Shown here piece after piece: positions 7,931 to 43,194 of a stretch of DNA of 64,000 nt. This DNA is from Paraphysomonas bandaiensis (lineage: Eukaryota > Protista > Chrysophyceae). Numbering within the stretch: position 1 is the stretch's first letter; every line of letters starts with the position of its first letter. Location: assembly GCA_965644295.1 (NCBI GenBank), contig CBFFRP010000236.1, forward strand, positions 138,209 through 202,208. The letters run 5' to 3'. Both the position numbers and the translations under genes were made by a program. The notes below the pieces were generated by a model. The model ran no database searches. It worked only from the letters and a program-made list of their open reading frames with translations, and was not told where the DNA came from.

Positions 7931-9041
7931 GTGCCTGATTGTGAATCAAATCATAATCATCTATTACATTGTTGTTTACATGAAATCAGGAAAACGATTA
8001 ATCCAGTGTGGCAGTATTTCGGGTTTTACCCAACAGTAGTGAGTGATAAGAACTACATTGTGGTTTGCAAAATATGCCACGAAAAATACAAAGAAGATAT
8101 GAGTGTCAAGCCAAATAAATGGGAGGTGACCTACAGCGCTTCTAGGAGCACGTCAAAATTGGCCACTCACTTGCAGAGCAGGCACCGAAAGGTATACCAA
8201 GACCTGTCTCGTGAGGAAATTGGTGATAGTACGTCTGGCACAAAGCACCCTTTCTTTAAAAGTTGTAAAGAAACGGTTCTTAAGAACCAACGAGAAAAGT
8301 ACTTGCGATGGGTTGTAGAGTCCATAAAAACCTCTCGATGAGTGCAATGATCCCCACCGTAGAGAATACATTGAATCTCTGGACCCAAGGATTATTCACG
8401 AAGATCGCCACGACGATACTAGAAGATTAACAGATAAAGCAGTAACTATGCGTGCCAAAGTTAGGAACATGATTCATGGTCAAAACGTCTCAATTACCAC
8501 GAATTGTTGGACGTCGCTCGCGTATCACAGTTATATCGCAGTCACCGTCCATTTCATTGATGAAGAGTGGAAACTTGTGACCCTAACTCTTGCGTGTGAC
8601 AATTTTCCAGGGGAGCACAGGTCTGCACATATTGTTAGTAAAGTAAACAGCATTTTAGACGCTTTTAAAATTAATCACGACGATGTGGTGTGCTGCGTAA
8701 CTGACAATGAGCCGACGATGAATGCGGCAGCGAACCTCATGACGTACTCATGGATGGGATGCTTTGATCACATACTTGAGTTAGTGACTAAAGTCCCATT
8801 ATCACAAGATGGCGTTAACGATGTTTTGAAGGCTGCACGTGAAGTGATAGCTCAGTTCACCAACTTAACACAAGCATCAGCTCGTGTCAAAGTCCCATTG
8901 ACAGCAGATTGCGTAAGCGATGTTTCAAATGCGTCTGCATGTTCTTTAAATGAGCTGATGCTTGTGTTAAGTTGGTGAACTGAGCTATCACTTCACGTGC
9001 AGCCTTCAAAACATCGTTAACGCCATCTTGTGATAATGGGA
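7931..9041 (+). pseudogene. hAT-family transposase relic with BED zinc finger; frameshifted and truncated by an inverted duplication
   Basis: BED finger (VWQYF..VCKIC..STSKLATHLQSRH), then SITTNCWTS (normally TDxWTS), YIAVTVHFIDEEW, CVTDNEPTM, CFDHILEL. Frame break near 8341. 90-bp inverted repeat 8794-8883 / 8952-9041. Confidence 0.85.
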
Positions 9042-9499: not shown

Positions 9500-12400
9500 G
9501 GAAATGAGTTAAAGGAAATGTTATAAGTTGGTCACTGAATTATATTGCTGTGAGATTATAATCACACGGAAGGACGTGTGTGGCATATTTCTCGATACTT
9601 TGTATTGGTAATAGTTTTCTTATTAGTAAACTAATTGGGAGGATAGACTTATAGAATGTATGGTATATTCGATCTGTATTTTTGAAGTTAGAAAATCACA
9701 CTTCGAAGAAAGTTCTATTCGCGTACTCCAATTTATATACATTGACACGAGTGATCTATAGGGATTATCCATACGAGTGATCTATAGGATTGTACTGTTC
9801 TTGGGTTCATTATGTTAGAAGATCTTATGATTATCAAGCGTCACGCGGAGGCTGATGAAGCCGATGCAGCACTAAGACATAAACGAAACATGGTGAGTGG
9901 ATTATAGCCAGTAGATTAATAGCCAGCTGTATGATTATAGTGTGCTGTATGTATGATTATAGTGTGCTGTATGTATGACTATAGTGTGCTGTATGTATGA
10001 TTATAGTGTGCTGTTTGTATGACTATAGTGTGCTGTATGTATGACTATAGTGTGCTGTATGTATGACTATAGTGTGCTGTATGTATGATTATAGTGTGCT
10101 GTATGTATGACTATAGTGTGCTGTATGTATGATTATAGTGTGCTGTATGTATGATTATAGTGTGCTGTATGTATGACTATAGTGTGCTGTATGTATGACT
10201 ATAGTGTGCTGTATGTATGACTATAGTGTGCTGTATGTATGACTATAGTGTGCTGTATGTATGACTATAGTGTGCTGTATGTATGACTATAGTGTGCTGT
10301 ATGTATGATTATAGTGTGCTGTATGTATGACTATAGTGTGCTGTATGTATGACTATAGTGTGCTGTATGTATGACTATAGTGTGCTGTATGTATGATTAT
10401 AGTGTGCTGTATGTATGACTATAGTGTGCTGTATGTATGACTATAGTGTGCTGTATGTATGATTATAGTGTGCTGTTTGTATGACTATAGTGTGCTGTAT
10501 GTATGATTATAGTGTGCTGTATGTATGATTGTAGTGTGCTGTTTGTATGACTATAGTGTGCTGTATGTATGATTATAGTGTGCTGTATGTATGATTGTAG
10601 TGTGCTGTATGACTATGATTATAGTGTGCTGTATGTATGACTATAGTGTGCTGTATGTATGATTATAGTGTGCTGTTTGTATGACTATAGTGTGCTGTAT
10701 GTATGATTATAGTGTGCTGTATGTATGATTATAGTGTGCTGTATGTATGACTATAGTGTGCTGTATGTATGACTATAGTGTGCTGTATGTATGACTATAG
10801 TGTGCTGTATGTATGACTATAGTGTGCTGTATGTATGACTATAGTGTGCTGTATGTATGACTATAGTGTGCTGTATGTATGATTATAGTGTGCTGTATGT
10901 ATGACTATAGTGTGCTGTATGTATGACTATAGTGTGCTGTATGTATGACTATAGTGTGCTGTATGTATGATTATAGTGTGCTGTATGTATGACTATAGTG
11001 TGCTGTATGTATGACTATAGTGTGCTGTATGTATGATTATAGTGTGCTGTTTGTATGACTATAGTGTGCTGTATGTATGATTATAGTGTGCTGTATGTAT
11101 GATTGTAGTGTGCTGTATGTATGACTATAGTGTGCTGTTTGTATGACTATAGTGTGCTGTATGTATGACTATAGTGTGCTGTATGTATGATTATAGTGTG
11201 CTGTTTGTATGACTATAGTGTGCTGTATGTATGATTATAGTGTGCTGTATGTATGATTGTAGTGTGCTGTATGACTATGATTATAGTGTGCTGTATGTAT
11301 GACTATAGTGTGCTGTATGTATGACTATAGTGTGCTGTATGTATGATTATAGTGTGCTGTATGTATGATTATAGTGTGCTGTATGTATGACTATAGTGTG
11401 CTGTATGTATGACTATAGTGTGCTGTATGTATGACTATAGTGTGCTGTATGTATGACTATAGTGTGCTGTATGTATGATTATAGTGTGCTGTATGTATGA
11501 CTATAGTGTGCTGTATGTATGACTATAGTGTGCTGTATGTATGACTATAGTGTGCTGTATGTATGATTATAGTGTGCTGTATGTATGATTATAGTGTGCT
11601 GTATGTATGATTATAGTGTGCTGTATGTATGATTATAGTGTGCTGTATGTATGATTATAGTGTGCTGTATGTATGACTATAGTGTGCTGTATGTATGACT
11701 ATAGTGTGCTGTATGTATGACTATAGTGTGCTGTATGTATGACTATAGTGTGCTGTATGTATGATTATAGTGTGCTGTATGTATGACTATAGTGTGCTGT
11801 ATGTATGATTATAGTGTGCTCTATGTATGATTATAGTGTGCTGTATGTATGATTATAGTGTGCTGTATGTATGATTGTAGTGTGCTGTATGTATGACTAT
11901 GATTATAGTGTGCTGTATGACTATGATTATAGTGTGCTGTATGTATGACTATAGTGTGCTGTATGTATGACTATAGTGTGCTGTATGTATGATTATAGTG
12001 TGCTGTATGTATGATTATAGCGTGCTGTATGTATGTTATTGTAGTTGTAGTGTTGTTGTTTTACTGTTATTATAGGAAAGAAAGCAAGAAGCAGATAGAA
12101 AAGCGAAAGAAGCTGAGGAAGCCGCGTATAATAAGATGTGGGGGTGGAAGGATGAAGGGAAGAAAACGTATCGTGAGATGAATCATGCATTTGCCGGTTT
12201 ACAGTCTATACTTGTACCGCATAAGTGCAAGAAGTCCACAATGCTGGAGCTGGAAGGTTTTTGTAGAGCCGCCCATACCAACGAGTCCTTTCTATACAGG
12301 CGTATGTCTCAGCGGGTTCTGAATGAGATATCTCCCTTTCATTTACGTTATAGACTGAAAAGGAGGGCAATACATCGGAAGTATATAGTGATGCGTGAAA

Positions 12401-15845: not shown

Positions 15846-17359
15846 CTATAGAAAATTTTCTCTGACTGTACCATCCACTGATCCAGTGTACAAACACCCT
15901 CTATATGCCGTAAAGCAAGTAATGCTTTCTGTATGTCTCTGCTCGGTGTATACCTTCTCTATAGTTCCCACACATTCCATGTGCTCTGGATCCCATATAC
16001 TTACAATTTCATTTTCCGATGAACCTGAGTATACTTTCCCGTAATGATAAAACCAACTCGAAATTATCGAGTCTGGAGTAAAAGAGAGGAGCTGCATCCA
16101 AAATAAGGGTCAGGGGAAACGAACCATTCAATCAAAGATAATATATTAGCACTATTTCTCATAAAGGGTGCACATATTACTTCTCAAACTCGTTTTGTTA
16201 ATAATAGTTCAAACGTACATACACGAGAACAGAAAATGGTAATTTACCTGCGTTAGGGTCCGAGTACACCACACTCTAACCGACCTATCTGCAGATGAAG
16301 ACAGCAATCGTTCTTTATCACTTAGCAGCAATAAGTTATGCACATGGTCTTCATGACCACGTAATGTACCAGTCTGTCCACACGTGATGTCGTGATCTCC
16401 TTCTCTATGTAAGCTACTAAAAACCCGTATCACCCTATCCCATGTTCCTGTTCCACAGGCAACGAAGACTCTGAGCCAATACCGTCCACGGGTACGGCCA
16501 TCGCGATGCCCGAGCGGTCCAGTGTTGCTGTCTCCATGCCCAGAGGAAATCCACTCGGCAACAGCAGCATTGACACAGATAGGGTTCTGTATTTGCGTCA
16601 CCAACTCCATTACTTTGCATTTTTTATTCATAGCCGCACTATTCGACAGACGTGCCGCACTAGCGTTCCATATACACACCCGCCCGTCAATAGAACTCGA
16701 CAGCAGCAGTGATGAATACGGCGGCCCGTTGCCAATACAGAAGGCCATAGAACTGGGAGCAGAGCATAAAAACAACGAACGTATAGCTCCATTGTGACCG
16801 TCGGATATGCCTGGTGCTTCAATATGAACCTATACACACGAGTTTAAGACTATAACCGGAAAAATGCAACATTGCATATCAATTCAATGCGACTGTCAAC
16901 AACTTGTTTACCCGGTTTATATCGTCGATATTACTGCATCGCCATGCTTCAATGCTTCCATCTTCATACCCCGCAAAAAGTACACACCCAACAACGCATA
17001 AACAAGTAACACTAGAACTAGATACAGAATCCAGGATGCCAATATAACGCATATTCCCAGTGCACTTCCACACACATACACGACCATCCGCCAAGCCGGA
17101 AAAAAGTAAACCTATAAAACCACACTTCAATACAGAGCCATAAGTGCATTGCACACATGCACACAAATCGCTAAAACGCCATCAATATATGTTAACATAC
17201 TTCTCCATACAGTGCTATATATGAGGTATTATTATATATAATGTTATATATGTTGTATTATATATAATGTTATATATGTTGTATTATATAACATGTATCT
17301 ATGATGTGATACCATGTACAACATTGTATGTGAGCTGTTATCTGTACTGTGTTATACAT
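15846..17359 (-). CDS. WD40-repeat protein, multi-exon (ends approximate)
   Basis: Repeated WD motifs: LFSGLADGRVCVW, FAGYEDGSIEAW, LSSSIDGRVCIWN, GHEDHV..LLSSSADRSVRVW, LYTGSVDGTVR. In-phase small 5' exons can be built from ATG 17359. Confidence 0.85.
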
Positions 17360-18846: not shown

Positions 18847-18921
18847 GTGTGTGTATAGAGGATAGGCAGAGTTGATGGTAATTTATTGAGGAGGGATACA
18901 TAAATAAGATATACTAGGAAC

Positions 18922-18924
<3 letters not shown>

Positions 18925-18954
<30 letters not shown>

Positions 18955-19430
18955 TGTATGTATGTATGTATGTATGTATGTATGTATGTATGTATGTATG
19001 TATGTATGTATGTATGTATGTATGTATGTATGTATGTATGTATGTATGTATGTATGTAGGTATGTATGTATGTATGTATGTATGTATGTATGTATGTATG
19101 TATGTATGTATGTATGTATGTATGTATGTATGTATGTATGTATGTATGTATGTATGTATGTATGTATGTATGTATGTATGTATGTATGTATGTATGTATG
19201 TATGTATGTATGTATGTATGTATGTATGTATGTAGGTATGTATGTATGTATGTATGTATGTATGTATGTATGTATGTATGTATGTATGTATGTATGTATG
19301 TATGTATGTATGTATGTATGTATGTATGTATGTATGTATGTATGTATGTATGTATGTATGTATGTATGTATGTATGTATGTATGTATGTATGTATGTATG
19401 TATGTATGTATGTATGTATGTATGTATGTA
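18925..19430. repeat. (TATG)n microsatellite, ~125 units
   Basis: Direct reading; rare TAGG variants. Confidence 0.98.
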
Positions 19431-19779
19431 CAGTATGTAAGGAATTTTCACACAAAACCATTGATTTTACATAAAACTATAGTTTTTACCCCCCTTTTTG
19501 TTGATTTTTGTAAAAGTGATTACAGAAGTTTGCAGCATTTAGAACACAATCACATTCATAATATGCATGTACTCTCATTGCTGCATATGTTAGTCTGCTG
19601 TATGTAGCAATGTCAGATGAATGTAACATCGTTACCAAGCACAAGATATTGTGGATTAGTTTCTCAGATATGGAGAAATGGAATTTCATGAAAGAATATA
19701 AAGAGGGTCGTGTCGAATCCCTCAAACAAGTCGTTGCATACAAGAAAAACATATTCAACAGTTCAGCATGATGTACATG

Positions 19780-22659: not shown

Positions 22660-22821
22660 ATGAGGGGACTGTATGAGTAGAGAGGAGACTGTGATGTGTG
22701 ATTATATGATCTATAGAGAGGAGGAGATGAAACATGGTGAAGATGAAGTAGTTGGGGGTGGTTAGAACCCTCTATGTAATGAACATATGGTTCAATCCGA
22801 CCACCTGGATATCCTCATGCT

Positions 22822-23480
22822 GTATGTATGTATGTATGTATGTATGTATGTATGTATGTATGTATGTATGTATGTATGTATGTATGTATGTATGTATGTA
22901 TGTATGTATGTATGTATGTATGTATGTATGTATGTATGTATGTATGTATGTATGTATGTATGTATGTATGTATGTATGTATGTATGTATGTATGTATGTA
23001 TGTATGTATGTATGTATGTATGTATGTAGGTATGTATGTATGTATGTATGTATGTATGTATGTATGTAGGTATGAATGTATGTATTAATGTATGTATTTA
23101 TGTATGTATGTATCTATTAATTTATGAATGTATGTATGTATGTATGTATGTATGTATGTATGTATGTATGTATGTATGTATGTATGTATGTATGTATGTA
23201 TGTATGTATGTATGTATGTATGTATGTATGTATGTATGTATGTATGTATGTATGTATGTATGTATGTATGTATGTATGTATGTATGTATGTATGTATGTA
23301 TGTATGTATGTATGTATGTATGTATGTATGTATGTATGTATGTATGTATGTATGTATGTATGTATGTATGTATGTATGTATGTATGTATGTATGTATGTA
23401 TGTATGTATGTATGTATGTATGTATGTATGTATGTATGTATGTATGTATGTATGTATGTATGTATGTATGTATGTATGTT
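22822..23480. repeat. (TATG)n microsatellite with short interruption, followed by (TG)n
   Basis: Direct reading. Confidence 0.98.
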
Positions 23481-23726
23481 GATTGCATTGCATCGTACTC
23501 CTTCTGTGTGTGTGTGTGTGTGTGGTATTGTAGGGTGTGTAAGATCGTATGTGATTATATCATACCGTTACAGGGCATACATATGCTCCCTCGCACATGG
23601 GAGAAGATATCACTTATGGAGCAGTTGACTTCTCCTTTCAGATCCTTTCCTCTCATCATTCCCTTGCACTAATCCACTTAGAGGCATTATTAGCATTAAC
23701 TGTCAGTGTAGTAACACATATATACG

Positions 23727-25696: not shown

Positions 25697-26374
25697 TCAA
25701 CTGCATCCCCTGCGGAATTGGCTGTGCACATTAGGGAGCAGTACTGGAGACGACTTCACTTTAACAACAGGATACAGATCTTCAGTTGATGTATTAACGG
25801 TTGGATGCTTGATAGTTGTAAACACCTCCGTCTTACGCCTTCTATTCACACGGATTTTAGGGAGACTCTGGCTATCAGTATCACCATTCTCCTCACGAAT
25901 AGAATCCAATAGTTTTGAAGTTTTAACAAAATAAGAAGCACCACTACGATTTACCAGCCGTTGTACCACCCTTACTTCATCGGTAAGACCTTTTTTGTGC
26001 AACACTCTTAGATTAGTCCGTACTAAGCCATCTAATCGAGGCGTAAATATACGGTCCATAACACTGTGAATCGATGTAATAATATCGAAAACATATTGCA
26101 AAAAGTGAGTGAATACAACACAATCACCAGCATTATCATAATAACACTGTAATAAATTCTTTTCAATAAATTGACGAAATAAATCAATACGATCCCAAAA
26201 TAATTCACGTAATGTAGGATCGTTACAGTCTTTATACTCCATGTGTTCAACTATACGATCAGTCATGAGTTGCATTTGAAAGAGTGTTGATTGCATACGA
26301 TGTGAAAAATGGGAGATGATGTTCTGTTTTTTTAATTCATTGTTTGTTTTGAATTGTTTTTTATGATTTAACAT
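25697..26374 (-). CDS. Hypothetical 225-aa protein, intronless orphan, divergent from the NLR-like gene
   Basis: ATG-initiated ORF with helical-looking N-terminal half and basic tail (NRRRKT). No family recognised. Confidence 0.55.
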   Translation of the reverse strand: MLNHKKQFKTNNELKKQNIISHFSHRMQSTLFQMQLMTDRIVEHMEYKDCNDPTLRELFWDRIDLFRQFIEKNLLQCYYDNAGDCVVFTHFLQYVFDIITSIHSVMDRIFTPRLDGLVRTNLRVLHKKGLTDEVRVVQRLVNRSGASYFVKTSKLLDSIREENGDTDSQSLPKIRVNRRRKTEVFTTIKHPTVNTSTEDLYPVVKVKSSPVLLPNVHSQFRRGCS

Positions 26375-26468: not shown

Positions 26469-27230
26469 GTGTGGTAGTTTAAGTGTTAATCTCTGATTCC
26501 ATTGAAGAGAATGTATTGAATTGATATACAGTTACTTGATGAGTAGATGGTGTTGGATTGTATATATGTGGAATTGAAGATGAGAGTGTTGAATGTTGTT
26601 GTTACATGGAGATGACATGATGCTATATAAACTATATGTATATACGTACACGTACATGTCTATGTATGCATGCATGTACAGTTTATCTCCTATATATATA
26701 CATACTCCATACGGTACTGCTGTATGTGCTGCGACTTTAGGTACGTAGGTACATACGTACACATATACATACACATACACACACACATACACAGTACGTA
26801 CATGTGCGTACTACTGTACTTCCCCTCTCAATATGTACAGAGTATGTACACATATCACTATATTTGTACAATTGTATTAAAAACTGTATGTGTGTATGTT
26901 TTATAGTGTAAAATATACAGAATTTTCTGTTTGTAGGTGAAAATAGATGTAAAAAAACACACACTCTCTACTTGTTTTTATGTATAGAAGCACTGTAAAA
27001 ATCAGTACTTTCTTAGAAAATTTCTAATTTCTAGAGGGGAATAGATAGAAATAGGGGATATCTATACATACACAGAGTGCTGTATTTGTATATGGGGATA
27101 TGGAGATTCAATGAAACGCTCGGTGGAATTCTTAACAGTTAGGCAGTTATGCATATATATATTGCCATCCAGTGACTAAACCACATCATATATCAGTAGA
27201 TTGTGGACACTGATCAATTAGTTGATTGTA

Positions 27231-30200
27231 ATGGATGGAAGAAGAGCTGTACATGCAGCTCATATTGACAGAGAATTGCAACTACAATCTTGCAATGGTA
27301 TCATAGATAAACTAAACAGTTACATTGAGACTGATATACAAAATGCAATTGATATATGCACGTATAATATTGAATCTGAACAACAAGATCAGATTTATTC
27401 CTCTCATTATGAAAATACAGAAAATGATGATGATTTGATGCATCAAGACAATGACAATCAGATGCTACAGTATCCGCTGCAGTTATGCAGAGAAGATATA
27501 AAACCTAAATCACAACAGCTGATATCTTTACCACCTTGGATGGTGGGGACTATGAAAACAGATCTTTACGAGCAAATAGGGGTGAATTACACCTGGTCGC
27601 AACTGCGGCTTTTGTTGTTGAAAGGAAAGATAGTGTTCGAGGAGAAGATATCAGAGATCCGTCGAAATCCTGAGAGTATGCCCGGCGAGGTAGTGGACCT
27701 CTACGTGGCTGACCCAGATAGTTTTGCTAATGCTGTTTTCTCAATATTTTTATATACTTGTAACTTTTGCGACTGTAGATGTTCTAATCTACAGATGTGC
27801 ATCAATCACGCGTTGGAAGAACGGAAATTTCTTTCGTCCTACACTGGTGTATTTCAAAGTGCTATTCATCCAAAGGAAACCACCCTTCCTCCCAACCAAG
27901 TTGCACTAGGATACCACTGCTCATTGTGGGCTCTTACAAATTGGGCACTTCGAGTTAGTCGTGGTAGTGCAGTTGTGGCGGAATCGGACAGACGCATGGC
28001 CTCCCTATGTGTAGAAGTCCTAGAACCATTCCAAGTCGTCCTCTATTATGCGCTCAGCAATTTACGACCTACTTACAATACTATATTTCGAGGAATTCGC
28101 GGGCGAGTTGAGTATCCCTATGCTCGGGGAGATGCCATCACTTGGCCTTCCTTCTCGTCTACATCCACAGCAGGGTCTGTTGCGCGGTCATTTATGGGAG
28201 ACAGTGAAGGAACATTTTTTGTAATAAGTACCTGTAATGGATCCACCATTGACTGGTTTTCATGGTTTAAGCTTGAAAAGGAGGTTTTATTGCGCATGAA
28301 TAGCAACTTCGAAGTAAAAGGCCGAATGTCGAACACGTTACTTTCCATGTTGGGTTCGCAAGCGGAGATCATTTCCATGTCTGAGCTGGGGAAAACTGTT
28401 CCTACACCATATCAGGAAGCGGAAAATGCTATTACACTACTTCTAAAGACTGTCTTTTTGTACTCTGATTTCTTGGAAAAATATGTTGTGGGTTATGTGT
28501 CAGCTGCTCCGAATATGAGGACGGGGGGTGTCAGACTTGATGAGGCGCTGGCAATCTTTCTTGAGAGTATAACCTCTAGGGAGGGAAACCCTGATGATTT
28601 ATGTCCATCTATGGTTATACTTGGGAGTGCTGGTGCAGGGAAAACATCAAGTGTACTCTACATTCTTTCAAGCATTGTTCAGACGCTCAGCACTACTTTG
28701 AACTACATGCATGACACCAATTCTTCCCCAGTGGTACCTGTTTTCGTTCCTCTACCTGGAACAAAATTTTGCGATCATGGTGGGGTCGATGCCTTCATAC
28801 TTCAGGAAATGCATGTTTCAAGTGAAGGGTTTAGTGCTCTATGTGCAGCACCAAGGCGAGTTGTTTTATTGCTGGACTCGTTGGATGAAGTGGATTTTAA
28901 AGGATCTAAGTCCGTATCGGAAGTTGTAATGTCTCTACTGCAACGCAATCCAATGGTTAGTGCTAATGTAGCAGGCATCATTCTGTCTTCGAGAGGCGAA
29001 TTTTATGCTGATAACAACTTTAACCCGCAGCATACATTTGGTAGATCAGCGAGTAGTGTACGAGCGACGAAAGTGTACCATGTGCAACCCTTTGTTGATG
29101 ATGACATGGATCTGTTTTTGCAGCGAAGCACGTCCTCTTCGAAGAATAAAACCATGAACCACAGTGAGATGGTACAGCATATCAAAAGCAGGGGTTTATG
29201 GGAGCATGTCAGGAATCCTTTTCTTCTTCATATGCTTGTCTCGACTTTGTTAATGGATCCAGACGAACTTGTGTGTGCTGGTGAAGGACGAACTGGTTAT
29301 GGCCTTTTTGAACTGTATGAGTCCTACTTTAAAAGCCTCTATCGCGTCACAGCTGAGAGGAATACCAGTGCTCATGATGCTGAGACATTTATATCGCAAG
29401 CTGAGGTGATTGCTTTTGCTCTACATTGTGATGGAGTATCTCAGGGTCTAGTATCAACATACGGTAGTCTTGTTCCCTCGCTTTTGCATTTGCCATTGCG
29501 CTTGGAGGTAGCGTACGTGCCAGTATCTGCATCAGCTAACGAGAACCCATCTACATTATCCTTTCGACATAAATCGCTCCAAGAATTTTTGGTTGCGAGG
29601 TGTATATACAATGATTTGGTGTCGAATTCTGAATTTAATTCTGATCGACTGATTGAGCGATGCGGATATCTGAGCTCGCACCCGAACGTGATCAGACACT
29701 TCAGCGATCGCCTTTGTCGAGATGAAACTAATCGTACTGTGGTTTGCGAGCACCTATCTGCCGTATTGAGATACTCCAGCGACTATCCAATTTCTGTGTC
29801 GAACGCTCTGACATTACTCTCGCATAGTCAAGTCGTGATCTCAAATTTTGTGAAAGATTTATCTGGGGTCAACATTTACAATGCGAATTTGAATGGAGGA
29901 ATATTCACCGGAGTGGACTTAACTGATGCAACATGGACAGATTGCTCGGTGAAAGGAATTGATCTGTCACATTCTGTTGTGTGGAATCTCTCTACTCTTG
30001 GCTGCAAAACATATTTGCAGCCATCAATGCACTGTAAATTTCCTGTAGCATCTATTGCATGCTCTTATGATGGAAAATATATTGCGTTATGTGGAGATAA
30101 TAAACTAGTTTTAATCGACGCGGAATCCTCTGATTATGCTGAATTACTCTCAGTGGAGTTCACAGGTGATATGAATAGGCCGACAAGGGAAGTCTCTTTC

Positions 30201-32642
30201 TCAGATGACAGCCGATTCCTGGGTGTTGTGTTTTCGAAAAATTCGCTAAATCACTTCCACGGTTCGGAACACATGAGCTATGCTGTATTTGGTTCTGTTG
30301 AATCTTGGCTGCATAACCACTCGGAGCTGCGACATCATTATCCCAGTTCTGAAGCGGAAGCTTTTGTTAATATTAAATTTTCTTATCATGCGACCTACAC
30401 CCTTCTCTGTGGTTCTCATTATTTTACAATGCTGAGTTCTTCAACAAATGAGGCTTTAGTAAAGTCAGATGTAGAGAACGAGCACGATAGGTACCAGTGT
30501 GGCGAATTTACCCCCGACGAAAGTTACTTACTCTTGTTTTGGGGAAGGTTCGAAATCACTCTCTACGCTCTGTCTGATGATAAAAGCATGAGCTTAACGC
30601 CTCTATGGATAAAAAATACGTATAACCTGTTTGAAGTGAATGGCTGGGGGGATGTGCGCGATATATCTTGTATGAAAACTACTGTAGATGGGGAGTACCT
30701 GTATTTCAGTGGGAGTTGCATTGTGGGAACAACGTGGAGACGTCTACTAAACCTTTCTTCCGATAACCCGAAAGGGGGCTACGATTCTGATCGCTACCAA
30801 ATTGAAAAAGAACTTGGGAGTCAGATTAGGAAAAAACAATCACAGGGTTTGTGTTTCACATTGCCGAAGTGTGGTAAATACTTGTTGAAGTACTTTGAAG
30901 ATGCCGCTGTTGTATTCGATATGGACAGCACTGCCCGAGTGTCTTCCATTGCTAAGTCAGGATGTAAAGACGCTGTTGTCAGTTACTCTCATGATCATAT
31001 CTTGTTAACTGAGAAAGAATATGTCAATGTATACGACTTTGACGTAGGGGCTCAAGAGTTGATGTATCGCAGTGGTCACATGAACGTCGTACGTAAGATG
31101 CACCCTCTGCCCGGGGGCAAGTATATAATTAGCTCTGGGGCGGACAGCAGGAACTTCATACACAGCACCATTTCAAATGCATCTGTTTTATTTCCAGATA
31201 TACACGAGAAGATATACGACTATAAATTCTCACAGTGTGGACGTCTTATGATGATCCTTGCTGCGGATTCTGGGTCACCCTCAGATGTAGTGATGGCTGT
31301 GCGACTGGACCCAGAAGCACCTCAGAATAGTAAAGTGATATTTTCGCAACGAGGCTTTAATAAGTCATGTACTTCGTTCTCTCCATCTGGAACTTACGTC
31401 GCATTTTACTACTGCTCATACGACTGGGATTCGAATACGAAAGAGTGCACGGAAAGAGGTGCTCATATATACCGCGGTGTTCATATCGTTCCCGTTGAGG
31501 AAGTGCTTCATATGGAAGAGGAGAAATTACATAGTGTTAGTAACGAAGGCTGGCGACCGGAATGGAGTAGCAACGCTATTGTCTATGAGGACTTTGGTCT
31601 CGGATATGTGTGTAGTATAGCATGGGCACCTACACGATCACACGATGTCACTGTGGCAGTAATTAATGTGGATGAATGTATATGCAGTGTTTACTCCCTG
31701 GCAGTAGCAGACAGCGCCAAGAAGGTTCAACTTTTCCAAATTGAAAACGCGAAAGTACATGATATGACAAAAGCGAGAGAAATAATGACATATTCTGAGT
31801 GTGGAAGTTATTTATACTTCTACAATTATGGCTGTTTTATGCTAACTATGTACGATGTATCGAACCCGCAGAATGTTCAGGTGTTAAATTCCTTGGAGGA
31901 TATCGCTGACTGCTACTTTTCGCCTCTTAGGCACCATTTTGCAGCCGTGTGCAAAGTCGAAAACTCGCTTAGTGTATATTCTGCCACAGATTTTAGAAAA
32001 CTGAAGATTGTCGGGAGCAATGGAATCGAGCAATGTATGCATGTTAGTCTCTCTGAATCCAGTTACAATGAATCTTGGAAACGTACAAATACTGATAACT
32101 TAGGGATGAGTTGGTCTCAAGACAATAAACTGCTGGCATTCGCCAGCAATTCCAGTGGCATTGATGTTGTTTTGCTGAATTTGTCACATAGCAGCTCCGA
32201 ATCCGCTGATATTATTGGTACTATGAGAGGTTCATGCCAAGCCCGATGTATAACGTTTAGCGAAGATGTGCGATATTGTTTTGTTGGATATGAAAATGGG
32301 TCAATACGACAGTTTTCTATCATGAGTAGTGATATGAATGTCCTAGCTTGTGTTTTTCAATATGGCCCCGAAACTCCAACCTTTAGCACCTTGGGTGCTA
32401 CAGGTGTGGACTCTATTCGAGACAACGAAACATTTCGCAGAGTGTCCGAAGAATTTGTAAACTTCGGTAATCGTGGAACGAAAACTCTTTTAGGTGGAAA
32501 TTGCGTGCCATTTGGGGCCGTAGATATTGAGAAGCATATTTCGCAATCACAGAATATTTCTCCTCAAGAAACTAATTGCGTCGTACACAATCAGTCAAAG
32601 AAAAAAAAGAAAAAACGCATTAAACCGCAGCCCTACTATTGA
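27231..32642 (+). CDS. NLR-like protein: ADP-ribosyltransferase (ARTC, R-S-E) + NACHT + pentapeptide repeats + WD40, intronless
   Basis: ART motifs TIFRG (~28080), FSSTS (~28152), EKEVLL (~28275). Walker A GSAGAGKTS (~28623), Walker B VVLLLDSLDE, NPFLL, winged-helix FRHKSLQEFLVA. Pentapeptides DLSGV/NIYNA/NLNGG/IFTGV/DLTDA. WD40-like repeats ~30040-32330. Confidence 0.9.
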   Translation: MDGRRAVHAAHIDRELQLQSCNGIIDKLNSYIETDIQNAIDICTYNIESEQQDQIYSSHYENTENDDDLMHQDNDNQMLQYPLQLCREDIKPKSQQLISLPPWMVGTMKTDLYEQIGVNYTWSQLRLLLLKGKIVFEEKISEIRRNPESMPGEVVDLYVADPDSFANAVFSIFLYTCNFCDCRCSNLQMCINHALEERKFLSSYTGVFQSAIHPKETTLPPNQVALGYHCSLWALTNWALRVSRGSAVVAESDRRMASLCVEVLEPFQVVLYYALSNLRPTYNTIFRGIRGRVEYPYARGDAITWPSFSSTSTAGSVARSFMGDSEGTFFVISTCNGSTIDWFSWFKLEKEVLLRMNSNFEVKGRMSNTLLSMLGSQAEIISMSELGKTVPTPYQEAENAITLLLKTVFLYSDFLEKYVVGYVSAAPNMRTGGVRLDEALAIFLESITSREGNPDDLCPSMVILGSAGAGKTSSVLYILSSIVQTLSTTLNYMHDTNSSPVVPVFVPLPGTKFCDHGGVDAFILQEMHVSSEGFSALCAAPRRVVLLLDSLDEVDFKGSKSVSEVVMSLLQRNPMVSANVAGIILSSRGEFYADNNFNPQHTFGRSASSVRATKVYHVQPFVDDDMDLFLQRSTSSSKNKTMNHSEMVQHIKSRGLWEHVRNPFLLHMLVSTLLMDPDELVCAGEGRTGYGLFELYESYFKSLYRVTAERNTSAHDAETFISQAEVIAFALHCDGVSQGLVSTYGSLVPSLLHLPLRLEVAYVPVSASANENPSTLSFRHKSLQEFLVARCIYNDLVSNSEFNSDRLIERCGYLSSHPNVIRHFSDRLCRDETNRTVVCEHLSAVLRYSSDYPISVSNALTLLSHSQVVISNFVKDLSGVNIYNANLNGGIFTGVDLTDATWTDCSVKGIDLSHSVVWNLSTLGCKTYLQPSMHCKFPVASIACSYDGKYIALCGDNKLVLIDAESSDYAELLSVEFTGDMNRPTREVSFSDDSRFLGVVFSKNSLNHFHGSEHMSYAVFGSVESWLHNHSELRHHYPSSEAEAFVNIKFSYHATYTLLCGSHYFTMLSSSTNEALVKSDVENEHDRYQCGEFTPDESYLLLFWGRFEITLYALSDDKSMSLTPLWIKNTYNLFEVNGWGDVRDISCMKTTVDGEYLYFSGSCIVGTTWRRLLNLSSDNPKGGYDSDRYQIEKELGSQIRKKQSQGLCFTLPKCGKYLLKYFEDAAVVFDMDSTARVSSIAKSGCKDAVVSYSHDHILLTEKEYVNVYDFDVGAQELMYRSGHMNVVRKMHPLPGGKYIISSGADSRNFIHSTISNASVLFPDIHEKIYDYKFSQCGRLMMILAADSGSPSDVVMAVRLDPEAPQNSKVIFSQRGFNKSCTSFSPSGTYVAFYYCSYDWDSNTKECTERGAHIYRGVHIVPVEEVLHMEEEKLHSVSNEGWRPEWSSNAIVYEDFGLGYVCSIAWAPTRSHDVTVAVINVDECICSVYSLAVADSAKKVQLFQIENAKVHDMTKAREIMTYSECGSYLYFYNYGCFMLTMYDVSNPQNVQVLNSLEDIADCYFSPLRHHFAAVCKVENSLSVYSATDFRKLKIVGSNGIEQCMHVSLSESSYNESWKRTNTDNLGMSWSQDNKLLAFASNSSGIDVVLLNLSHSSSESADIIGTMRGSCQARCITFSEDVRYCFVGYENGSIRQFSIMSSDMNVLACVFQYGPETPTFSTLGATGVDSIRDNETFRRVSEEFVNFGNRGTKTLLGGNCVPFGAVDIEKHISQSQNISPQETNCVVHNQSKKKKKKRIKPQPYY

Positions 32643-33090
32643 TCAGCAAGTATTTTCTTTATAAATTATCGTGGAGTGCATACTGGTATAGGTCGAACAA
32701 GATATCTACAGCATGCAGTCAATCGTCAGCACAACTCGCCATAAAGCCCGCGAGTGCAATATATATGGCTGATAAAATTTTAGCGCTTTATTATGTGACC
32801 CTTACTTTAATTATTGCTGCAAGTAGTATTTACAATTAATACATATGTATCCTGTTTTGATAGTTGATGCATTGAAGGTGGTGTCTCATTGATTAATAAG
32901 ACCAAGATTACACTGACCCTGCAGTCCACTAGGATTTCATTCAAATCTATAAACTTTCTTGCGGCGCATTAGTATACATTACTCTTAAATCAACTCCACC
33001 ACACTAGACATTCCAATACCCAATACAACATATATAACCTGTAAACAACTTAAACTGCAATACGTCAGAAACATAGAAATGTACGAAAAC

Positions 33091-35275: not shown

Positions 35276-36736
35276 CTACCATTCCACACATGCAATCGGT
35301 TTTTGTCGCATCGTTGCGTCAACAATACAGTAATTACAAGTCGTACACTCCGACATACTAGAACCAGAATCAACTCCAGCATTTAACTCATCATCCCTAC
35401 TTTTCCACCCTTCGTTTGTACTATAACCTCGGGATAGCTTTGACGTACTCACACCTTCCCACTTCTTGACTATGCCTGGATCTCTTAATATTGCCCGGCC
35501 TGATTGCACGAGATCAAATCCATCAACTTCCATCGCATCACGAAGAGCATTGTAACTATGCACCCCACCCATTATGCACACTCTAACGTTGTGTTCCATC
35601 TTCTTTCCCTTAGTTGAGTTCCATCTTCGCAGAGTATGTAACACACACAACGCGGAGGACCGAAAATATAGCTCTTTAAAAGGAATGTACGGAATGACAA
35701 AAGAGCCGAAGAGCATAAGTGCAATACTCTTCATTCTATCTGTTGTGGCAGATATCATTCGGGCGAGGGGTACGCCACCCCGTAACATAAAGAGCCCATT
35801 CTCTAAGATTAATCCACCACTTAATGCAATAATATCAACACCACAAGCAGCAAACGACTCAGCAATAGAGCAGGCTTCCTCGACTGTCAAACCATCCGCA
35901 GTTCCATCTACTAAGTTCAGCTTTACCATGAGTACAGCGCGTCCGTTAAGTGCATGCTTCACCAACCGCAATACTTCAGAGGGAAAGGCAACTCTGTGAG
36001 CTAGAGATATTCCTGGGTTGAGTCTAGGAGATAGGAACTGACTGAGAAGGTACCCATGACCACAATGTATCTCCACACAATCAAACCCGGCTTCAACAGC
36101 AACTCGAGAGGCAGACACAAAATCTGTCGCCAGTTTACTCTTATCTGTAGCAGTCATTTTACGACAAAAATTGAATTGAGCTGGGTTAAAGAGACGCTGA
36201 GCAGACATTTGTTCGTGAGTGGAGTCTTCTGAGAGAGTGCGATCCGAAAAATAACCAGCGTGGGTAAGTTGAATGCATGCAAGTGAGTCATTGGAATGAA
36301 TTGCATCCACCACTTGCTTCATCATTCTCTTGGATTTCTCCCTACATATCAGCTGCGCTGGAAATGAGCGGCCAGCTGGAGATACAGCAGCATAAGCGAC
36401 GATACACATACCAGCACCACCCTCAGCCATTCGTGCATGGAAAGATACGAGTTCTTCACAGGGAACACCATCTCTATCACACATTGCCTCATATGTTGCA
36501 GCTTTGATCACTCTATTGCGAAACTCAGTGTTTCTAATCTTAAGTCTTGAAAATGGCTTTATTGATTGTTGTGGTATGTCATATTCTGCTTGTAACTTCT
36601 TCAGTAATGCCTCAGATGTCTTTTGTACAGTTGTATCGTATATAGAAGCCGTGTAATCCGCATATCTTGCACCCACCCAATGTAAAAGATACAACAAGAG
36701 GGGTAAACCCAAACATATTGCAATAAATGCAAGCAT
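35276..36736 (-). CDS. NADH:flavin oxidoreductase / Old Yellow Enzyme family with N-terminal membrane anchor, intronless
   Basis: FRNRVIKAATYE, GGAGMCI, QLTHAG, AGFDCVEIHCGHGYLLSQFLSP, GRAILRDP, C-terminal CTTCNYC. Confidence 0.9.
   Translation of the reverse strand: MLAFIAICLGLPLLLYLLHWVGARYADYTASIYDTTVQKTSEALLKKLQAEYDIPQQSIKPFSRLKIRNTEFRNRVIKAATYEAMCDRDGVPCEELVSFHARMAEGGAGMCIVAYAAVSPAGRSFPAQLICREKSKRMMKQVVDAIHSNDSLACIQLTHAGYFSDRTLSEDSTHEQMSAQRLFNPAQFNFCRKMTATDKSKLATDFVSASRVAVEAGFDCVEIHCGHGYLLSQFLSPRLNPGISLAHRVAFPSEVLRLVKHALNGRAVLMVKLNLVDGTADGLTVEEACSIAESFAACGVDIIALSGGLILENGLFMLRGGVPLARMISATTDRMKSIALMLFGSFVIPYIPFKELYFRSSALCVLHTLRRWNSTKGKKMEHNVRVCIMGGVHSYNALRDAMEVDGFDLVQSGRAILRDPGIVKKWEGVSTSKLSRGYSTNEGWKSRDDELNAGVDSGSSMSECTTCNYCIVDATMRQKPIACVEW

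Positions 36737-39734: not shown

Positions 39735-43194
<3,460 letters not shown>

Follow-up and report, generated by a model that had tools for sequence, protein, structure and literature searches.

A candidate NLR-like receptor with a fused ADP-ribosyltransferase effector in the chrysophyte Paraphysomonas bandaiensis

How unicellular eukaryotes sense infection and stop it is largely unknown. A window of 64,000 nucleotides from the chrysophyte Paraphysomonas bandaiensis (the whole stretch of DNA analyzed here: GenBank assembly GCA_965644295.1, contig CBFFRP010000236.1, positions 138,209 to 202,208 of the forward strand) contains a gene in which an ADP-ribosyltransferase (ART) domain precedes a NACHT switch, pentapeptide repeats and a WD40-type region. 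Does this gene encode an immune receptor whose built-in effector is an enzyme of the kind found in toxins? The gene is a single uninterrupted, intronless open reading frame (ORF) on the plus strand, and the window has no N letters. The architecture had been proposed in an earlier note made from the nucleotide sequence alone, and it held: the motifs lie where they had been placed, the ART and NACHT domains were recovered by Pfam and, beyond chance, by structure, and the propellers by weak Pfam matches and a low-confidence model. We consider it probable that the product is a self-contained cytosolic NLR-like conflict protein, in which a ligand-gated switch controls an arginine-type ART output, probably in defense.

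The ART part carries the motifs FRG (aa 286-288), FSSTS (308-312) and E349-K-E351. The R-S-E signature that the earlier note had described as complete is indeed intact (R287, S310, E351) and nearly invariant in the family. Pfam assigned aa 266-364 to PF01129, the NAD:arginine ART family (E 1e-11, 45 bits against a cut-off of 22.3), and sequence matches included rat ART2.2 (E 1.6e-4), with weaker matches to HopU1 and Vis; an Atlas feature search of aa 1-455 returned generic ART clusters only. An AlphaFold2 model of aa 150-945, built on an 85-row alignment, had a predicted local distance difference test score (pLDDT) of 90.1 and a predicted template modeling score (pTM) of 0.90. In this model the N-terminal domain took the ART fold (Z 15-16) and the switch that of NACHT, as the earlier proposal required. 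Structural alignment of residues 150-387 gave Z scores of 16.0 for HopU1, 15.9 for Tre1, 15.3 for ART2.2 and 15.2 for Vis. The features of the ARTC class were all present: the ART fold, the Arg, the STS, the catalytic Glu and an E-x-E loop as in arginine-specific members. The catalytic core is also the most conserved region of the protein, with 62% identity to the ortholog P0001.

An exhaustive HMMER search with aa 150-930 found 552 cluster representatives, and the family counts given here come from the 150 matches listed plus the query and its orthologs; word-indexed homolog searches returned 3 and 18 proteins only. In at least 81 distinct proteins a complete ART precedes a NACHT domain, at a median spacing of 85 residues; 42 of them extend to the pentapeptide region and 29 have recognizable WD40s. 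The architecture, centered on free-living Euglenozoa, is thus more widespread than the earlier note had supposed. The catalytic Arg is conserved in 81 of the 81 proteins, the STS Ser in 80 and the Glu in 80, while in the family alignment the NACHT switch retains the Walker A Lys in 83 of 85 rows, the Walker B Glu in 85 and the sensor-1 Arg in 84. Since the catalytic residues of the ART and the switch residues of the NACHT domain are nearly invariant alike, both active sites are selected together. A short helix at aa 365-375 was found in 81 of 83 ART+NACHT proteins among the matches listed; outside the fused set it scored only in six proteins, which resemble truncated or divergent family members. 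This helix is a candidate fusion-specific element for docking, coupling or autoinhibition.

The E-x-E motif and the closest folds indicate that the output is most likely mono-ADP-ribosylation of the arginine type. The same gated switch could instead act mainly by hydrolyzing NAD+, either depleting it or producing an ADP-ribose signal as TIR and SIR2 enzymes do, or could modify RNA or other residues. The first residue of E-x-E is Glu in 71 of the 81 proteins and Gln in 8, among them the nearest named relative, P0005, and in known ARTC enzymes Q-x-E goes with other acceptors. Rodent ART2 enzymes can be strong NAD+ hydrolases, one of them is among the top matches of the ART domain, and NADase activity is the rule among known STAND effectors. 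Nevertheless, the window protein itself belongs to the E-x-E majority and its closest folds are HopU1, Tre1 and Vis, which are arginine transferases, so that a different output seems rather unlikely.

The motifs of the switch lie at aa 465-472 (Walker A), 546-553 (Walker B, LLLDSLDE), 662-666 (NPFLL) and 778-786 (FxHxSxQEF). Walker A fits GxxGxGK[ST], and the D-S-L-D-E of Walker B (aa 549-553) fits D[GAS]hDE, the signature that defines NACHT (10.1101/2022.07.19.500537). Residues 391-877 aligned with ADP-bound NOD2 (Z 13.5 over 409 residues), and NLRP3 and NLRP1 also matched; the top Foldseek matches of the switch were autoinhibited NLRC4 and ADP-bound NOD2, and the nearest Atlas shapes were bacterial NACHT-pentapeptide(-WD40) proteins (TM 0.5-0.6). 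The Pfam NACHT match (aa 461-630, E 1.3e-4) speaks against this class assignment, as its 22.3 bits fall below the cut-off of 26.7. The domain is a divergent member, and its fold and motifs compensate for the low score. By every testable feature except that cut-off, the window protein is a NACHT protein with an ARTC-fold enzyme.

Toward the C-terminus, Pfam matches of the WD40 propeller type span aa 917-1704. A model of the C-terminal ~900 residues (pLDDT 47.6, four-row alignment) is all-beta, with repeated four-strand units that resemble the double propellers of Pwp2 and Apaf-1. The region most likely forms two beta-propellers, with a blade number that this low-confidence model does not fix. 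The propellers, presumed to be the sensor, are the least conserved part of the protein (32-33% identity to P0001). A diagonal scan detected no similarity among the WD40 repeats (the best 36-aa internal identity, 0.28, equals that of shuffled sequence), the same was true of the orthologs, and no DNA repeats were found in the region. The conserved segment that follows possibly folds back onto the pentapeptide stalk. Leucine-rich repeats (LRRs) are absent from the C-terminus of this protein, which has the WD40-type region instead, and the N-terminus, where the ART lies, had no Pfam match to a HET domain. The first 150 residues could be an adaptor or a regulatory part.

Two intronless proteins of 1764 aa, P0001 and P0004, encoded by two haplotypes of one metagenome sample, share 38% identity with the window protein over its full length. 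Because full-length orthologs exist at this identity, the whole ORF is one conserved protein. Their locus has a GC content of 39.5% and intron-bearing eukaryotic neighbor genes. At a third ortholog locus (JGI) a frameshift splits the gene into an ART ORF (P0006, 1596-2792) and a NACHT-WD40 ORF (P0002, 2752-6927), which overlap by 41 nt. The break lies between the catalytic glutamate, which it directly follows, and the family helix; it may be either a sequencing or assembly error or a true frameshift, and P0006 and P0002 were kept as two unjoined proteins. In two independent loci, those of P0001 and P0002 (L001/L007, 15579-17330, minus strand), the ortholog has a RING-finger gene downstream in tail-to-tail orientation; this gene is absent from the window. 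The neighborhood of the gene is not shared between the window and the ortholog locus L001.

The gene is a real host gene and is very probably expressed. One contig of the independent run X10 spans the whole stretch, including the host flanks. Transcription, which the earlier proposal presupposed, is supported by a contig of run X1, guessed to be RNA, and by two marine metatranscriptome studies. The X1 contig starts 19 nt 5' of the ATG and ends ~280 nt 3' of the stop, without joints and without a spliced-leader tail, and pieces within 30158-32823 (the 3' half and the 3' untranslated region) occurred at 95-100% identity in the two studies, one based on polyA RNA and the other on cDNA. The contig ends and the 3' bias fit an mRNA, though contigs cannot prove transcription. 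The GC content at third codon positions is 0.40, and the surrounding host DNA has 38% GC. In the ART-NACHT protein, hydropathy over 19 residues peaks at 1.62; no signal peptide, membrane helix or glycosylphosphatidylinositol (GPI) anchor was found, as neither the first 60 aa nor the rest of the protein contains a hydrophobic segment, and a Pfam scan of the 1803 aa detected no delivery domain of ART toxins.

These data bear on the idea that the gene is a delivered toxin or a relic, that is, a contaminant, a pseudogene, or viral or bacterial cargo. The idea could draw on the lack of introns in an intron-rich surrounding, on a fold nearest to bacterial effectors and on the ortholog locus where the ART and NACHT parts are split. 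Against it stand the missing signal peptide and membrane segment, the host-like third-position GC content and the continuity with the host flanks in run X10; contamination, viral cargo and a pseudogene were rejected. Intact orthologs also stand among eukaryotic genes, and no relative was detected in viral contigs, prokaryote genomes, plasmids, metagenome contigs or PADLOC by pattern scans that see close relatives only. Defense-system models gave no PADLOC match and a partial EruA match of 22 bits against a cut-off of 1000. A toxin or relic is therefore highly improbable and largely refuted.

We propose that at rest the NACHT domain would be ADP-bound and closed, with the ART packed against it. 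This arrangement is suggested by the well-ordered joint model, which matches resting NLRs, and by the fusion-specific helix; the pTM over the two modules likewise suggests that the ART is held in a fixed position against the NACHT domain. The propellers would bind a ligand, probably a protein that comes from an invader or a host protein that is guarded. By analogy with other STAND proteins, the ligand would trigger exchange of ADP for ATP and oligomerization, and the ART domains would be freed or clustered as a result. The enzyme could then move ADP-ribose from NAD+ onto arginines in a protein of the cell or of the invader, as its E-x-E motif and nearest folds suggest, and this modification may halt the growth of the infected cell or kill it. 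Because the ARTC site is complete in one chain, unlike that of TIR NADases, gating would operate through occlusion of the cleft or through substrate access.

We infer the immune role from architecture, analogy and family dynamics, namely expansions, sensor swaps and repeat homogenization. Defense is a known role of NACHT proteins whose N-terminal enzymes target NAD+ (10.1101/2022.07.19.500537). Features typical of conflict proteins in the family include paralogs (five in Lacrimia, two in Apiculatamorpha and two in a kinetoplastid-like metagenome), variable C-termini and, in some members, near-identical WD40 repeats. The C-terminal parts comprise canonical WD40s, degenerate propellers, BspA-type LRRs (P0009), WD40s plus ankyrin repeats and unclassified regions; one member has an N-terminal SAM domain. 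In P0030, P0040 and P0050 the diagonal scan gave repeat identities of 0.75-1.0 against ~0.3 in shuffled sequence, and by their sequences these proteins are better candidates for variable receptors than the copy in the window. As further variants, P0065 and P0133 have the NACHT-pentapeptide-WD40 chassis with the ART decayed or missing and are possible sensor-only forms, and P0060, P0107 and P0126 lack NACHT and have two or three ART domains in tandem.

Selection was analyzed in the window copy and in the orthologs. Strain differences within the ORF comprise 11 silent and 4 replacement changes (pN/pS ~0.10, p 3e-5), and the gene is under purifying selection. Between the haplotypes P0001 and P0004, one pair compared at low coverage, silent differences in the gene number 55 and replacement differences 45 (pN/pS 0.22; 0.05 in the ART and 0.27-0.31 in the propellers), while four neighboring genes of similar total length have 29 and 9. 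The ortholog gene exceeds its neighbors in silent rate (p 0.002) and in replacement rate (~5x per site, p 3e-7), which is compatible with weaker or balancing constraint on a sensor.

Several points weigh against a gated immune receptor. AlphaFold often returns the closed form for monomers, and the fixed position of the ART against the NACHT domain was judged from the pTM of the model. In the haplotype comparison pN/pS is below 1 everywhere, and the propeller values are explained equally well by relaxed constraint and by selection. The earlier note had advised a search for paralog expansion or positive selection in the WD40 part; for this copy neither was seen, as no paralog lies within the 64-kb window and purifying selection prevails. 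Since the copy is apparently single, its strain differences are mainly silent and its propellers have no internal repeat similarity, it is not a rapidly diversifying receptor. It is more like a stable guard of a fixed ligand. A likeness to fungal HET-E had also been suggested, of which the layout stands; a HET-E-like hypervariable sensor was rejected for this copy, given the lack of internally similar WD40 repeats and the purifying selection.

The same facts allow a non-immune role, in which the propellers of a domesticated switch bind a fixed host partner or a metabolite and the ART exerts reversible control over a host target, for example in stress, feeding or encystment. Such a role would agree with an apparently single copy under purifying selection, with a degenerate propeller region that is conserved over its length in the orthologs, with the RING gene next to the ortholog in two loci and with RNA in field samples without known infection. 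It agrees poorly with the patchy distribution, the paralog expansions and the sensor swaps across the family, with an ortholog more polymorphic than its neighbors and with the differing neighborhoods of the window and L001. We regard it as improbable, and continue with a gated conflict protein as the preferred explanation.

Where did the gene come from? The named members among the matches listed are Lacrimia lanifica (five divergent paralogs), Flectonema neradi, Apiculatamorpha spiralis (two), Papus ankaliazontas and Pigoraptor chileana, that is, diplonemids and free-living kinetoplastids plus one filasterean entry; most family members are environmental sequences. No Bodo saltans member was among the named matches listed. 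Two further members occur in one metagenome, which is assigned to a kinetoplastid because a contig has BILBO1 and same-strand gene arrays. In the trees the Pigoraptor chileana protein (P0014) groups with a kinetoplastid-like sequence; presumably it may stem from kinetoplastid prey in the Pigoraptor culture, which makes the holozoan record doubtful.

The trees were quick searches on subsets with unnamed rows left out. The ART-fused NACHTs form one branch against an ART-less NACHT-pentapeptide-WD40 outgroup, with Shimodaira-Hasegawa-like approximate likelihood ratio test (SH-aLRT) values of 99-100, and in a short alignment most fused ARTs cluster separately from the stand-alone ones (12 exceptions). 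P0005, a diplonemid sequence and one of the Lacrimia paralogs, is the sister of the window protein and its orthologs, with support of 100 and 96 in the ART+NACHT trees and 87-89 with NACHT alone. When the named euglenozoan sequences were held together, the approximately unbiased (AU) test gave p-AU 0.0475 for ART+NACHT, rooted on an unnamed clade, which is a marginal rejection of this grouping, and 0.485 for NACHT alone, which is no rejection; these tests omitted the long or doubtful rows P0077, P0014 and P0031, and in one case P0037 too. That the gene lacks introns and has a diplonemid sister, although its genome is apparently that of a stramenopile, suggests, with weak support, a transfer from eukaryote to eukaryote. 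Ancient paralogy with loss is a possible alternative, and the trees do not fix the direction of transfer.

The fuller scenario would be an undescribed class of single-chain protist NLR-like receptors with a toxin-type arginine ADP-ribosylation output, which the NACHT domain gates through a dedicated docking helix. The class would have expanded in diplonemids and free-living kinetoplastids as a defense against giant viruses or bacteria that live inside cells, and a heterotrophic stramenopile would have acquired it by horizontal transfer. We consider this scenario somewhat less likely than not. As the family occurs in free-living kinetoplastids, it draws attention to hosts whose giant viruses are in culture, such as that of Bodo saltans virus, which encodes 12 ARTs (PMC9503650).

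How does the protein compare with systems already described? NACHT-pentapeptide-WD40 proteins of bacteria and fungi (Kibby et al., 10.1101/2022.07.19.500537; ARM_5-NACHT-WD40 proteins such as P0088) share its chassis of D[GAS]hDE NACHT, winged-helix domain (WHD), HD2, pentapeptide stalk and propellers. The window protein differs in its R-S-E ART effector and lies on a separate branch; the fused domains named in that NACHT survey are TIR, sirtuin, PNPase, nucleases, peptidases and pentapeptide repeats, and ADP-ribosylation is never mentioned (10.1101/2022.07.19.500537). Fungal HET-E/HET-D (HNWD) proteins have the same effector-NACHT-WD40 order and, like some family members, near-identical WD40 repeats; this copy has a pentapeptide stalk, no HET domain and no sign of high internal repeat identity or hypervariability. 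It is neither a HET-E/HNWD protein nor a strict NBD-LRR. Plant TNL proteins (TIR), SIR2-STAND/Avs and DUF4062/NIR/TeTIR-NACHT-WD40 proteins, including TEP1 (10.64898/2026.09.21.753143, 10.64898/2026.05.01.722283), likewise place an NAD+-using enzyme before a STAND switch and a repeat sensor. Those enzymes have TIR-like or sirtuin folds, hydrolyze NAD+ and often build their sites by oligomerization, in contrast to the ARTC transferase fold and self-contained site found here. The earlier claim of an effector outside the usual set holds for the ART, but NAD+-consuming STAND effectors (TIR, SIR2, DUF4062/TeTIR) were already known.

HopU1, Tre1, Vis, ExoS and ART2.2 share the fold (Z 14-16) and the R, STS and E-x-E motifs. 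ARTC toxins and ecto-enzymes, however, are secreted, injected or GPI-anchored, while the window protein is cytosolic, has no delivery domain, contains an additional helix and is coupled to a NACHT domain. NLRC4, NOD2 and NLRP3 have the same NBD-HD1-WHD-HD2 fold in a closed-like form, and Apaf-1 likewise has a double-propeller sensor; compared with these animal proteins, the window protein has no LRR and no death fold and carries an enzyme effector in the same chain, and Apaf-1 is NB-ARC, not NACHT. Full-text literature, searched without supplementary tables and with a passing mention possible, yielded no description of an ART-NACHT or ART-STAND fusion. The main texts of a 2026 prokaryotic STAND survey and of a fungal NLR survey are silent on such a fusion, and the TeTIR preprint mentions ART for PARP4 only. 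The novelty that the earlier note had left to a search was thereby upheld, and the ART-NACHT-repeat family is apparently undescribed.

Known STAND outputs are death folds, pores, proteases, nucleases and NAD+ hydrolases. If our proposal is true, a covalent ADP-ribose writer of a toxin class, built in as effector, would add a type of output. It would also tie intracellular arginine ADP-ribosylation in eukaryotes, for which few writers are known, to immunity. With sensor, switch and enzyme joined in a single chain and an activity that is easy to assay, protist NLR gating can be tested directly with this family.

Table 1. Features of the ART-NACHT gene in the window.
Feature	Residues (aa)	Position	Strand	Basis or remarks
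ART-NACHT-pentapeptide-WD40 protein, intronless ORF	1-1803	27231..32642 (ATG to stop)	+	ORF; colinear intronless orthologs P0001/P0004
Transcript-like contig of run X1		27212..32880, extending 38 nt further to ~32918	+	Without joints; X1 as RNA is a guess
N-terminal region, known family not found	1-150	27231..27680	+	Common to orthologs (38%), partly to Lacrimia P0005
Helical half of ART	151-258	27681..28004	+	Conserved Y175-T176, N237-x3-R241 (Arg in 69/72 rows)
ART catalytic core, R-S-E (ARTC)	259-390	28005..28400	+	R287 (28089), S310 of STS (28158), E349 (28275), E351 (28281)
Family signature helix	365-375	28323..28355	+	K/R-x-S-x-T-L-L-x-M-L, inserted between last two ART strands
Helical connector and pre-NBD F-L-x-x-Y-V motif	391-455	28401..28595	+	Model and alignment
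NACHT nucleotide-binding domain (NBD)	456-630	28596..29120	+	Walker A 28623-28646, Walker B D-S-h-D-E 28866-28889, sensor-1 R588
HD1, WHD, HD2	631-865	29121..29825	+	P663 motif, WHD His780 (75/78 rows)
Pentapeptide-repeat beta-helix stalk	866-930	29826..30020	+	Pfam match aa 876-913 below cut-off; model
Degenerate WD40-type region	931-1700	30021..32330	+	Weak Pfam matches; low-confidence model
Conserved post-propeller segment	1701-1755	32331..32495	+	47% identity to P0001
Non-conserved tail, lysine-rich stretch resembling a nuclear localization signal near aa 1790-1798		32496..32639	+	Missing from orthologs

The neighboring genes in the window are ordinary eukaryotic genes on both strands, encoding a DEAH-type helicase, a SWEET transporter, a flavin oxidoreductase, an arginyl-tRNA synthetase and a p25-alpha protein. 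The arginyl-tRNA synthetase gene (39735-43194, plus strand) has many GT-AG introns and a long N-terminal extension, and the ART-NACHT gene stands intronless among such intron-rich genes. Such gene structure excludes a kinetoplastid as the host. One exon of the arginyl-tRNA synthetase gene, searched without a spliced model, scored best on the Plasmodium enzyme among solved structures, a result that neither supports nor contradicts a stramenopile host. An Old Yellow Enzyme gene (35276-36736, minus strand) is intronless and encodes a hydrophobic N-terminal segment; its relatives are an environmental group at 52-56% identity, followed by bacterial and other eukaryotic sequences at 33-40%. Upstream of the ART-NACHT gene and divergent from it lies a 225-aa ORF (25697-26374, minus strand) without a Pfam or Atlas match. 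The P0006/P0002 locus also has a 225-aa minus-strand gene upstream. A second ART at 16212-16829 was considered and rejected, as its match to a family member was a WD40 repeat only.

At another locus (L003, 15770-25343), an LRR_5 gene and then a large gene with NADAR and lipase domains come after P0016, a kinetoplastid-like paralog. As NADAR domains remove ADP-ribose adducts, this locus may be a small writer/eraser or defense cluster. In the window, 8448-8978 (plus strand) holds a fragment of DUF659, a domain associated with hAT-type transposases, that scored below the Pfam cut-off. Strongly G/T-skewed simple-sequence tracts occur at ~10000-12000, 18900-19450 and 22800-23650, and the (TATG)n microsatellites at 18900-19450 and at the start of the 22800-23650 tract give rise to spurious repetitive ORFs.

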